Source: Tubulanus polymorphus
Taxonomy: Eukaryota; Animalia; Nemertea
Reading direction: 5' to 3'
Assembly: GCF_964204645.1 (NCBI RefSeq)
Contig: NC_134033.1
Coordinates: 5,480,231 to 5,544,230 of the forward strand
DNA length: 64,000 nucleotides
The position numbers and the translations under genes are program-made. Shown here in pieces: positions 27,066 through 64,000 of the stretch. The first letter of the stretch is position 1. Each line of letters begins with the position of its first letter. The notes under the pieces are model-generated. The model ran no database searches. It was not told the DNA's origin and saw only the letters and a list, made by a program, of their open reading frames with translations.

Positions 27066-27098
27066 ATGCCCGTACAAGGTAGAAGATATCAACCGAGG
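27066..27098 (+). CDS. Putative first coding exon ([11 protein letters not shown])
   Basis: ATG at 27066 and a phase-0 donor AGG|GTAAGA. A CpG-rich region at 26270-26930 lies upstream. Confidence 0.45.
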
Positions 27099-63000: not shown

Positions 63001-64000
63001 TGACCTGGATATTGATGTCGACAAAACTGACGATATTGATGGACAGATCCCCAAGATTGAATTGGAACAGACCGAAACAAGTGTCGAGTTACCAAAGTTC
63101 TCTAGTTCCCATACTACCGAAAAGTTGATGGAAATGGGTGAGACCGAAACCGCGCCAGATACAAGTGACGACACAAGTGAGGGCAAATCGGACAAAAGTG
63201 GTTTTGGATTTGGTATCAAGTTTCCAAAGTTCAAAGGCCCACGTTTTGGTAAAGGTGACAAATCTGCTGACCTGGATATTGATGTTGACAGAACTGACGA
63301 TATTGATGGACAGATCCCTAAGATTGAATTGGAACAGACCGAAACAAGTGTCGAGTTACCAAAGTTCTCTAGTTCCCATACTACCGAAAAGTTGATGGAA
63401 ATGGGTGAGACCGAAACCGCGCCTGATACAAGTGACGACACAAGTGAAGGCAAATCGGACAAAAGTGGTTTTGGATTTGGTATCAAGTTTCCAAAGTTCA
63501 AAGGCCCACGTTTTGGTAAAGGTGACAAATCTGCTGACCTAGATACTGATTTTGACAAAACTGAAGATATTGACACAGAAGAACAGATCCCCAAGATTGA
63601 ACTGGAGCAGAACGAAACAAGTGTTGATTTACCGAAGTTCTCTAGTTCTCGTACTACTGAAAAGTTGATGGAGAAGGACGAGACCGAAACCGCGCCAGAT
63701 ACAAGTGACGACATAAATGAAGCCAATTCTAAAATAGGTGGTTTTGGATTTGGAATCAAGTTCCCAAAGTTCAAAGGTCCACGTATTGGTAAAGGTGACA
63801 AATCTGATGACCTGGATACTGATGTCGACAAAACTGACGATATTGATGGACAGATCCCCAAGATTGAATTGGAACAGACCGAAACAAGTGTCGAGTTACC
63901 AAAGTTCTCTAGTTCTCATACTACCGAAAAGTTGATGGAAATGGGTGAGACCGAAACCGCGCCAGATACAAGTGACGACACAAGTGAAGGCAAATCGGAC
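27066..64000 (+). CDS. Giant multi-exon gene: partial plakin domain (spectrin repeats + desmoplakin-type SH3) fused to a >4,500-aa acidic repeat region with AHNAK/periaxin-like units; 3' end lies beyond the window
   Basis: Exon chain with GT-AG sites and consistent phases: 27066-27098, 38445-38510, 38912-39013, 42041-42106, 43181-43315, 43641-43865, 44224-44370, 44788-44850, 45603-45694, 45956-46064, 46687-46858, 47322-47398, 48248-48369, 49036-49198, 49563-49628 (1638 nt = 546 codons), then 50351 to the window end. The first four exons are less certain. Confidence 0.8.
28700..29150 (-). repeat. Second copy of the 40-bp minisatellite element (~8 units), inverted relative to 18826-19475
   Basis: ACAAACTCTCTACCGGCCGCTTCTATCAGGTTTACAGATT units. 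Shared head at 29065-29150; terminal hairpin TATTCCGA-TT-TCGGAATA at ~28708-28725. Confidence 0.9.
29988..30285 (+). repeat. 39-bp minisatellite, cluster 2
   Basis: Same unit as 22685-23078. Confidence 0.88.
31320..31645. repeat. Degenerate ~60-70-bp tandem repeat
   Basis: Recurring CCTGGTGGATCC..ACAAGTGGAATCCTCTATTGC..GTCCTACTGCA; a related single copy lies near 44680. Confidence 0.65.
33647..34335. repeat. ~57-59-bp minisatellite, ~12 units
   Basis: Unit GTGCCTGTTCTAGTCACTTACTCCAACCACAGCTGTGAGGGG(A)GTTCACCAAGAACCCAT. Confidence 0.92.
34341..34424. mobile_element. 84-bp fold-back mini-MITE (PIF/Harbinger-like ends); related copy at ~45329-45432
   Basis: GGCCCGGTTT..AAACCGGGCC TIR that extends imperfectly for ~28 bp. 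CCCCGGGTTAAAG is shared with the 45.3-kb copy. Confidence 0.6.
35630..36060. repeat. ~110-116-bp tandem repeat (about 4 units); related copies at 36360-36520 and 49290-49450
   Basis: CTGATAAAA(C/T)GTCTAATGTCTG..TGTAGTTCATTTTCAATTAAAA motifs at 35692, 35801 and 35917, with a partial unit at 36031. Confidence 0.8.
36131..36176 (-). ncRNA. Second, weaker hammerhead copy on the opposite strand
   Basis: TTATTC-CTGAAGAT-GACAATTAGGATACAGTC-GAAACGTT-GAATAA; stem II has two mismatches. Confidence 0.5.
36220..36265 (+). ncRNA. Minimal type I hammerhead ribozyme (Penelope-type)
   Basis: TTATTC-CTGAAGA-T-GACTAT(TAGGAT)ATAGTC-GAAA-CG-TT-GAATAA: stem I 6 bp, core CUGAAGA/GAAA, stem II 6 bp, palindromic AACGTT stem III. 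Confidence 0.7.
36745..36859. repeat. (TA)n microsatellite
   Basis: ~115-bp alternating AT run. Confidence 0.97.
37741..38295. repeat. 47-bp minisatellite, ~11-12 units
   Basis: Unit AGCTTAGACTGGTCTTAAGTTGTTAGATTGGCTATAGAACCAAATTG (37741, 37788, 37835...). A single related copy lies at 32100-32165. Confidence 0.92.
38445..38510 (+). CDS. Plakin-like gene exon ([22 protein letters not shown]; alternative ATG at 38502)
   Basis: Polypyrimidine tract ending TCAG acceptor, AGA|GTAAGT donor, 66 nt, phase 0-0. Confidence 0.6.
38912..39013 (+). CDS. Plakin-like gene exon ([13 protein letters not shown])
   Basis: TTTTTGTTTGTGCAG acceptor, ATT|GTAAGT donor, 102 nt, phase 0-0. Confidence 0.65.
39030..39450 (+). 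repeat. 39-bp minisatellite, cluster 3
   Basis: Same unit and orientation as clusters 1 and 2. Confidence 0.88.
40550..40702. repeat. ~25-bp degenerate tandem repeat (ATGGCATTGTTACCTATGGCTACCT)
   Basis: About six alternating sub-units are visible. Confidence 0.75.
41035..41205 (-). mobile_element. tRNA-derived SINE, 5'-truncated
   Basis: B-box GGTTCGAACC, then CTCCACCCAGGAG..AATGGG and CAGGGAGAGATGACTGATA shared with the copy at 42835-43040. Confidence 0.7.
42041..42106 (+). CDS. Plakin-like gene exon ([13 protein letters not shown])
   Basis: TTTTCTATTTTCAAG acceptor, AAG|GTGAGT donor, 66 nt. Confidence 0.65.
42183..42687. mobile_element. hAT-like MITE with 13-bp TIR AGGCGCAGATCCA
   Basis: TIRs at 42184-42196 and 42674-42686; no TSD seen. 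Confidence 0.55.
42835..43040 (-). mobile_element. tRNA-derived SINE with CORE-like domain
   Basis: A-box TGGCCGGGTGG, B-box GGTTCGAAC, then GTGTCCTCGGGCAAGACTCTTAACCTC, which resembles the MIR/CORE motif. Confidence 0.75.
43181..43315 (+). CDS. Plakin-like gene exon (DLAHRYD..KLVAT)
   Basis: AG/GT boundaries, 135 nt, phase 0-0. Confidence 0.75.
43641..43865 (+). CDS. Plakin-like gene exon, spectrin repeat SR4/SR5-like junction
   Basis: [25 protein letters not shown] matches the plakin WSW.LQL..C...HL..N..Y.QFF motif; 225 nt, phase 0-0. Confidence 0.88.
44224..44370 (+). CDS. Plakin-like gene exon, start of the plakin SH3
   Basis: [21 protein letters not shown]; CAG acceptor, AAC|GTAAGT donor. 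Confidence 0.88.
44788..44850 (+). CDS. Plakin-like gene exon, SH3 core
   Basis: [21 protein letters not shown]; TAG acceptor, AAG|GTAAGG donor. Confidence 0.88.
45603..45694 (+). CDS. Plakin-like gene exon, SH3 end
   Basis: [27 protein letters not shown] matches plakin KV..G.E..VP.V...PPP..EA; phase 0-2. Confidence 0.88.
45956..46064 (+). CDS. Plakin-like gene exon ([17 protein letters not shown])
   Basis: Phase 2-0; TTTCAG acceptor, CAG|GTACGA donor. Confidence 0.82.
46687..46858 (+). CDS. Plakin-like gene exon (ERILKAL..TTR)
   Basis: Phase 0-1; TTTCAG acceptor, G|GTAATT donor. Confidence 0.75.
47322..47398 (+). CDS. Plakin-like gene exon (AANDAEV..LLLWR)
   Basis: Phase 1-0; CAG acceptor, CGG|GTAAGT donor. 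Confidence 0.75.
47537..47728 (+). mobile_element. tRNA-derived SINE with inverted 5' head, A-tail and 14-bp TSD
   Basis: TSD ACTACTGGTGTGAG at 47523-47536 and 47729-47742. The A-box head is on the minus strand (47537-47577); the B-box GGTTCAAACC is on the plus strand (47593-47602). Confidence 0.8.
48248..48369 (+). CDS. Plakin-like gene exon ([14 protein letters not shown])
   Basis: Phase 0-2; TTTGTAG acceptor, AC|GTAAGG donor. Confidence 0.78.
49036..49198 (+). CDS. Plakin-like gene exon (KWREEFF..KEIE)
   Basis: Phase 2-0; TTTTCAG acceptor, GAG|GTATGT donor. Confidence 0.78.
49563..49628 (+). CDS. Plakin-like gene exon (ATETKEE..EQKQ)
   Basis: Phase 0-0; CTCAG acceptor, CAG|GTAACA donor. 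Confidence 0.75.
50351..64000 (+). CDS. Giant repetitive exon (at least 13,650 nt / 4,550 codons), D/E/K/S/T/P-rich, with three repeat families
   Basis: Long pyrimidine tract + TAG acceptor at 50350, phase 0 ([21 protein letters not shown]...). The same frame (codon starts = 2 mod 3) holds at 50384, 51602 and 63962. The ORF track lists no terminated ORF in this frame, which is consistent with no stop before the window end. Confidence 0.9.
58795..64000 (+). repeat. Coding tandem repeat, 267 bp / 89 aa, ~19.5 units, with a 1608-bp higher-order period
   Basis: Unit [89 protein letters not shown]. Confidence 0.95.

Follow-up and report, generated by a model that had tools for sequence, protein, structure and literature searches.

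The plakin-repeat domain of plakins binds intermediate filaments (PMC3352950, PMC9145010), and plakins other than the spectraplakins have been reported to be absent from fly and worm, being probably later offshoots of the spectraplakins (PMC3352950). We analysed a stretch of 64,000 nucleotides from the nemertean Tubulanus polymorphus (contig NC_134033.1, here C9, positions 5480231-5544230; hereafter the window), read it together with 40 kb of downstream DNA, and scanned the host genome (268 Mb) by profile. With a probability of about 0.7, we propose that one gene starting in the window encodes a cytoskeletal linker of the plakin family, other than a spectraplakin, composed of a plakin-type head, a giant acidic repeat exon and a plakin-repeat tail. 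A preliminary description of the window had joined a plakin module to an AHNAK-like scaffold. Since four additional exons encode a plakin-repeat domain, this picture should be replaced by that of a complete plakin-type linker. Our literature search retrieved no paper in which plakin and AHNAK are treated together for invertebrates, nor any paper on the plakins of lophotrochozoans.

From 50351 to the window end, frame +2 is free of stops over 4,550 codons, as direct translation confirmed, and with the downstream DNA the frame from 50351 stays open for 7,733 codons. It was missing from the list of open reading frames because it runs off the window end. The remaining five frames over the same stretch contain between 105 and 994 stops each (about 499 being expected from base composition), more than 3,500 of the open codons lie outside the array of 89-residue repeats described below, and the chance probability of staying open was 1e-15 and 1e-21 for the two unique ends of the exon alone. 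The frame starts exactly at a strong acceptor, the AG of which is part of the preceding stop codon, and a consensus donor is located 11 codons ahead of its stop. We obtained a gene model of 12 exons separated by 11 GT-AG introns (Table 1), with matching phases at all junctions, including 49628/50351, the splice sites having been read directly from 43181 to the stop. The coding length is at least 8,265 codons (about 0.9 MDa) from exon U1 (43181) to the stop codon, which lies 15.2 kb downstream of the window. The phase-consistent exon chain that the preliminary description gave for the SH3 region and the giant exon was recovered, and its minimal estimates of 4,550 codons for the exon and 5,000 residues for the protein were both exceeded.

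Upstream of the giant exon, the highest coding score was obtained for exon F, whose phase fits that of exon D, and the second-highest for exon U1, whose splice sites and phase were verified. Further upstream, the donor of candidate exon U2 scores best in the 17-43 kb interval; its coding score is 13 and it has no homology support, and splice-site strength makes it likely to be a further exon. The start formerly placed at 27066 was not confirmed: the ATG exon and its gtaaga donor are present, while the start itself and the figure of about 130 residues preceding the core found no support. Between exons D and F, the stretch 46686-46850 (+) was rejected as an additional exon for a phase mismatch with exon D. 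It is open, with a coding-like composition and a good acceptor, and may be an alternative or decayed exon.

To characterise the head, each exon was searched individually against profiles and structures. Exon C alone matched the Pfam family SH3_10 with 24.4 bits for a cut-off of 22.8 (22.4 bits in the genome scan). Exon A aligned to residues 179-211 of desmoplakin (3r6n) and residues 94-130 of plectin (3pe0), which correspond to the junction between spectrin repeats 4 and 5, and exon D matched residues 235-261 of plectin 3pe0, collinear with exon A; exons U1 and B, each searched alone, had no match among solved structures. We also built a profile from the SH3 exons of this gene, of the spectraplakin of the same genome and of four paralogues, every exon forming its own row. 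Among solved structures, its best match was plectin 3pe0 (E 4e-11); desmoplakin ranked third (1e-6), and generic SH3 domains occupied the rank between them and the lower ranks. Compared with the spectraplakin at C2, exon A is 27% identical and exon B 33% identical to the matching exon, and both end at the same codon as their counterparts, so that intron positions are conserved between the two genes. Exon D aligns with spectraplakin and paralogue exons and the borders of exon C recur in three paralogues. All the motifs quoted in the preliminary description were found in place (WSW at 43668, an 11-residue motif at 43707, IVPVHKR at 44290, PVRAM at 44335, a 12-residue motif at 44818 and LIPPPD at 45651), and its assignment of a core made of spectrin repeats 4/5 and a plakin-type SH3 agrees with the SH3_10, plectin and desmoplakin matches.

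The detectable plakin domain consists of part of spectrin repeat 4 and of spectrin repeat 5. It appears to stop there, because the SH3 is followed by a short helix alone before the acidic linker. In genome-wide profile scans, no match to CH (PF00307, E up to 10), Spectrin (PF00435), PF18373 or GAS2 (PF02187) was obtained in C9:5.48-5.58 Mb, in line with the earlier statement that the gene carries no CH domains, and PF18373 gave nothing relevant anywhere in the genome.

The tail was recovered by reading the downstream contig for plectin repeats, as had been suggested. Plectin repeat (PF00681) matches were found in three of the four tail exons, with 18.7, 20.5 and 24.6 bits. Together the tail exons hold about six plectin-repeat motifs, roughly one plakin-repeat domain, and their sequence is 36-48% identical to the tails of the paralogues.

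The strongest argument for joining head, giant exon and tail into one gene comes from at least four other C9 loci that carry this head and tail. At two of these, a giant exon of unrelated sequence is present and the order of head, giant exon and tail is kept. The paralogue at C9:5.79 Mb (minus strand) has an exon of 2,147 codons, unique in sequence, acidic and Pro-rich, which ends in plakin repeats. The "DRFG" paralogue at C9:12.59 Mb has an exon of 3,682 codons made of an unrelated Thr/Gly/Asp-rich repeat, followed by a plakin-repeat exon. The paralogues at C9:15.38 and C9:11.04 Mb have no giant exon, head and tail being separated by 1.6 kb. The paralogues thus resemble the gene studied here (the C9 gene) in SH3 exon borders, head-then-tail order and tail sequence, but their central exons are unrelated or missing, and AHNAK-type units are present only in the C9 gene. 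As head and tail are shared, they would be the older parts, between which the giant exons were inserted later. When the C9:5.79 Mb paralogue was used in a word search, it returned only unnamed plectin-repeat proteins and did not bring up the same architecture elsewhere.

The two small plakin-like genes that lack a giant exon, their SH3 head and plakin-repeat tail being about 1.6 kb apart, were observed at L025:810-1118 plus ~2545-2850 and at L021:124-186 plus ~1561-1970; the former has helix B and its entire SH3 in one exon. The SH3_10 match at C9:1.15 Mb was discarded as a plakin, since it belongs by sequence to an NCK-like adaptor. The genome also contains an open frame of 14,113 codons dense in plectin repeats (G000:C1:13347533-13379164, +) with a period of 1,503 bases and many copies of identical score, which looks like an epiplakin-type giant.

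The preliminary description had the rod replaced by an acidic, probably disordered repeat, and both charge-hydropathy analysis and AlphaFold pointed the same way. The giant exon has a net charge of about -715 with 35% charged residues, and each of its zones falls on the disordered side in the charge-hydropathy analysis. In AlphaFold models, three 89-residue units showed no secondary structure (predicted local distance difference test, pLDDT, 46), the 81-residue units showed one short helix each, located at the motif (35-49, 116-132, 199-209), and pLDDT was 44-46 across the modelled repeat stretches. The repeats are thus probably disordered. We found no coiled-coil rod, in the sense that long helices are absent from the AlphaFold models of the repeats, no dedicated coiled-coil predictor having been run. 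The PYWLDDEK-type motif, present in about seven copies in 56399-58918, is predicted to form a short amphipathic helix amid disorder and looks like a repeated docking motif for some partner.

The motifs KFPKFKGP, LPKFS and DLDIDVD occur 16, 18 and 10 times, respectively, in the window. Repeat zone I contains 13 copies of a 10-residue helix-like motif and scattered AHNAK-type motifs. In the AHNAK-type array, the 89-residue units form a higher-order repeat of 1,608 bases, some copies of which are 100% identical; because of this identity, the expansion of the array is taken as recent and the copy number as provisional. Residues 1-520 have no Pfam family, and a word search with residues 1-420 found no relative in a length band of 2,500-7,960 residues, a band that leaves out any full-length relative above 8,000 residues. 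Residues 1-1200, searched against 1.84 billion representative proteins, had one weak match, a 271-residue AHNAK-like metagenome fragment; in the contig of this fragment, neither a plakin head nor a plakin tail was present. Pfam matches to DbpA and IpaB in the giant exon were rejected as noise summed over repeats, no single stretch passing the threshold.

Table 1. Exons of the proposed gene, candidate upstream exons and zones of the giant exon (window positions unless prefixed)
Feature	Position	Strand	Description
Candidate first exon of the preliminary description	27066..27098	+	ATG, 11 codons, gtaaga donor; in phase-0 donor list; unverified, without homology support
Candidate exon U2	42040..42105	+	22 codons, phase 0-0, pyrimidine-rich acceptor, consensus AAG/gtgagt donor
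Exon U1	43181..43315	+	45 codons; probably end of helix B, loop and start of helix C of spectrin repeat 4
Exon A	43641..43865	+	75 codons; end of spectrin repeat 4 (WSW) and helix A of spectrin repeat 5
Exon B	44224..44370	+	49 codons; helix B of spectrin repeat 5 and first SH3 strand; splice sites verified
Exon C	44788..44850	+	21 codons; SH3 core; Pfam SH3_10
Exon D	45603..45694	+	SH3 end (LIPPPD) and start of helix C of spectrin repeat 5; ends in phase 2
Exon F	49036..49198	+	First base completes split Ser codon; short helix C, then acidic linker
Exon G	49563..49628	+	22 codons, acidic linker, phase 0-0
Giant exon	50351 to L002:9516 (9,516 bases past window end)	+	23,166 bases, 7,722 codons, phase 0-0
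Unique zone	50351..51910	+	Residues 1-520, basic and Ser/Pro-rich at start; no known family
Repeat zone I	51911..56350	+	About 1,480 residues, units of about 95 residues; 285- and 246-base tandem repeats
81-residue-unit zone	56351..58900	+	About 850 residues, about 7 units with PYWLDDEK-type motif; 243-base repeat
AHNAK-type array	58901..64000 plus about 7.3 kb past the window	+	46 units of 89-95 residues; 267-base period, 92% identity
Last zone	3' end of giant exon		732 unique acidic residues
Tail exon 1	L003:661-874		Phase-matched
Tail exon 2	L003:1356-1488		Phase-matched
Tail exon 3	L003:4080-4239		Phase-matched
Tail exon 4	L003:4968-5201		Phase-matched; ends in stop

The likeness to AHNAK proposed in the preliminary description was borne out by database searches. 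In a word search, all the matches of the 89-residue array were AHNAK-type proteins, with E values from 5e-34 to 4e-7: skate AHNAK2 (5e-34), a Nematostella "AHNAK" with a PDZ domain (2e-29), Daphnia AHNAK-like PDZ proteins, and frog and fish AHNAK. The alignments bring a single core motif into register, unit by unit, with 35% identity over 202 columns to P0001, and 40 shuffled or unit-permuted queries scored 0 against the same AHNAK-type proteins. Because of this register and of the null scores of the controls, the resemblance to AHNAK is genuine in terms of sequence order. It may reflect common descent or convergence on the motif. The 89-residue unit itself occurs nowhere else in the genome. 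The eukaryotic metagenome contig from which the weak match to residues 1-1200 came (ENA ERZ25073769; L032, 18 kb) was observed to contain more than 1,500 codons of AHNAK-like repeats, with a change of frame around position 10,000.

We recovered no PDZ exon at the C9 locus in tblastn searches with the N-terminal 450 residues of ten AHNAK-type proteins, which gave out-of-frame chance matches with E of about 1 or worse, the N-terminus of the gene being itself provisional. A PDZ-like match on the minus strand (45412-45585) was dismissed as chance because it falls in two different frames with stops. A separate AHNAK-like gene is present at C1:19647466-19664407 (+), with small exons that share 47-73% identity with the N-terminal part of an AHNAK-like protein from Daphnia, and with open frames of 4,666 and 5,199 codons. 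The Daphnia protein finds its N-terminus and other repeats at this locus, not at C9. Judged by these similarities, the C9 gene is not an AHNAK orthologue and the C1 locus looks like the true AHNAK-like gene.

Several other explanations were weighed against a single plakin-type gene. The locus could correspond to two or three separate genes, namely a small head gene, a giant-repeat gene starting from an internal ATG and a small plakin-repeat gene. Such a partition would agree with the in-frame ATG at codon 16 of the giant exon and with the existence elsewhere of head-plus-tail genes devoid of a giant exon, and the junctions were deduced from sequence. However, the coincidence of the frame start with a strong acceptor and a preceding stop codon, the phase 0 of both flanks of the giant exon, which fits its neighbours, the donor placed just before the stop, and the same three-part order at two paralogous loci all make separate genes rather improbable. 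We considered it still less probable that the locus is decaying or not expressed, the exon being an open satellite-like array or inflated by an assembly artefact. A frame built by tandem repetition of an open unit would remain free of stops at no cost, identity among certain higher-order copies reaches 100%, and the first 1,200 residues of the giant exon lack relatives beyond the one weak match; yet the codons outside the 89-residue array are open as well, splice sites and phases are intact at all junctions, and the 89-residue units differ mainly at synonymous sites (ratio of non-synonymous to synonymous differences, pN/pS, 0.38), although this ratio is a weak test because repeat copies evolve in concert.

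That the C9 gene would be the AHNAK orthologue of this host is very improbable. Its best repeat matches are annotated AHNAK or AHNAK2 and the giant single exon is common to both, but the head and tail are plakin parts, the N-termini of AHNAK-like proteins found no PDZ exon, a better candidate exists at C1:19.647-19.664 Mb, and the unit has 89 residues, compared with the 128 residues of the AHNAK repeat unit. We gave almost no weight to an ordinary spectraplakin isoform, with CH exons upstream and spectrin rod and GAS2 exons downstream. The spectraplakins of fly and of this genome also have giant exons just after the plakin domain (PMC3352950), but those of the worm studied here lie elsewhere. 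A complete one, with CH, SH3 and plakin-repeat exons, spectrin rod and GAS2, is located at C2:23.125-23.195 Mb, where the CH exons of the genome scan are found, and a second spectraplakin-like locus at C1:22.80-22.82 Mb has spectrin, plectin-repeat and GAS2 matches, CH and SH3 not being seen there; PF00435 and PF02187 both match C2:23.17-23.19 Mb and C1:22.80 Mb. At C9:5.48-5.58 Mb, by contrast, the upstream CH or spectrin exons that such an isoform would need were not matched, nor was GAS2, the tail ends in a stop and receptor genes flank the gene.

Other points weigh against a single plakin-type gene or limit what can be drawn from it. Taken one by one, the tail exons reach scores that equal or lie close to the Pfam cut-off. 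Every exon junction was deduced from genomic DNA, and diverged spectrin-repeat exons could have escaped detection in the 17-42 kb interval, so that the N-terminus is provisional. The AlphaFold runs used single sequences, and the repeat copy number may be misassembled or polymorphic. Finally, the function suggested below is derived wholly by analogy with vertebrate plakins.

If the C9 gene is a single plakin-type gene, its tail would bind cytoplasmic intermediate filaments, as the plakin-repeat domains of plectin and desmoplakin do, and its head, like plakin domains in general, would attach to a partner at a membrane or junction. In place of the coiled-coil rod, the acidic repeats would form a very long flexible tether, with a contour length of up to about 2.8 micrometres, along which regularly spaced basic and hydrophobic motifs could offer many weak binding sites. 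Because the giant exon is in phase 0-0, skipping it would yield an in-frame small protein with head and tail, like the two small paralogues. The gene may have arisen in a local head-plus-tail family in which the site between the two modules repeatedly gained giant repeat exons. A bolder and rather unlikely extension is that the AHNAK array is an old portable giant-exon cassette, copied between AHNAK-like and plakin genes and replacing the rod, with the head-tail site acting as a hot spot where giant disordered spacer exons are repeatedly born or captured. This would produce filament linkers differing in reach and binding capacity, and would provide a first clue that AHNAK repeats serve to tether intermediate filaments mechanically.

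A protostome with a whole head-plus-tail plakin family would shift the origin of the plakins other than spectraplakins, or reveal a separate origin. Combined with no spacer, an orphan spacer or an AHNAK-type spacer, this head and tail form a natural series in which the role of the central region of a linker could be tested, and AHNAK-type repeats, still poorly understood in structure and core function, gain a more readable setting between modules of known function. Automatic annotation would likely break or shorten such a gene, and, with its 100% identical higher-order copies, the gene would serve well for testing assembly and annotation methods.

Intronless rhodopsin-type G protein-coupled receptor (GPCR) genes are present on both sides of the gene (15691-16881, +; L004:3059-4234, -; L005:5606-6745, +), which thus sits inside a GPCR cluster, the downstream boundary beginning about 23 kb past the window end. 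A further pair of GPCR-like open frames occurs downstream of the window, some 29.8-31.0 kb (+) and 19.8-21.0 kb (-) from its end. The window also contains a LINE-type (long interspersed nuclear element) open frame with reverse transcriptase and endonuclease domains (1067-3790, +) and BEL/Pao-like retroelement fragments with DUF1759 and an integrase zinc-binding domain (12576-14343, -). A dispersed minisatellite of about 39 bases, which translates as a 13-residue repeat, was found at 22640-23083, 30097-30345, 39055-39580 and L003:836-1207, the last copy in the intron between tail exons 1 and 2. It adjoins every fetched paralogue and floods protein-level comparisons.

Compared with the classical plakins (plectin, desmoplakin, envoplakin and periplakin), the C9 gene has the same three-part layout, with an SH3 embedded in spectrin repeat 5, a spacer in the middle contained in one very large exon and a C-terminal plakin-repeat domain. 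It differs from them in that only spectrin repeats 4-5 are detectable, instead of repeats 3 to 9, and in its single small tail module; no CH pair was found, unlike in plectin. The position of their dimerising coiled-coil rod is occupied by an acidic stretch of about 7,700 residues for which disorder is predicted. With the spectraplakin isoforms VAB-10A, Shot-PRR and MACF1b, it shares the combination, in an invertebrate, of a plakin domain with plakin repeats and a giant exon after the plakin domain, as well as SH3-region intron positions in the case of the spectraplakin of its own genome. Unlike them, it occupies a separate locus and has no CH, spectrin rod, GAS2 or EF-hand exons, and its giant exon encodes AHNAK-type and orphan repeats instead of plakin repeats. 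The likeness to AHNAK, AHNAK2 and AHNAK-like proteins is that of a giant single exon of tandem units sharing a core motif. These proteins differ by the PDZ/AHNAK-type N-terminus, none being found at the C9 gene, whose protein is far more acidic and has its units of 89-95 residues between a plakin head and a plakin-repeat tail.

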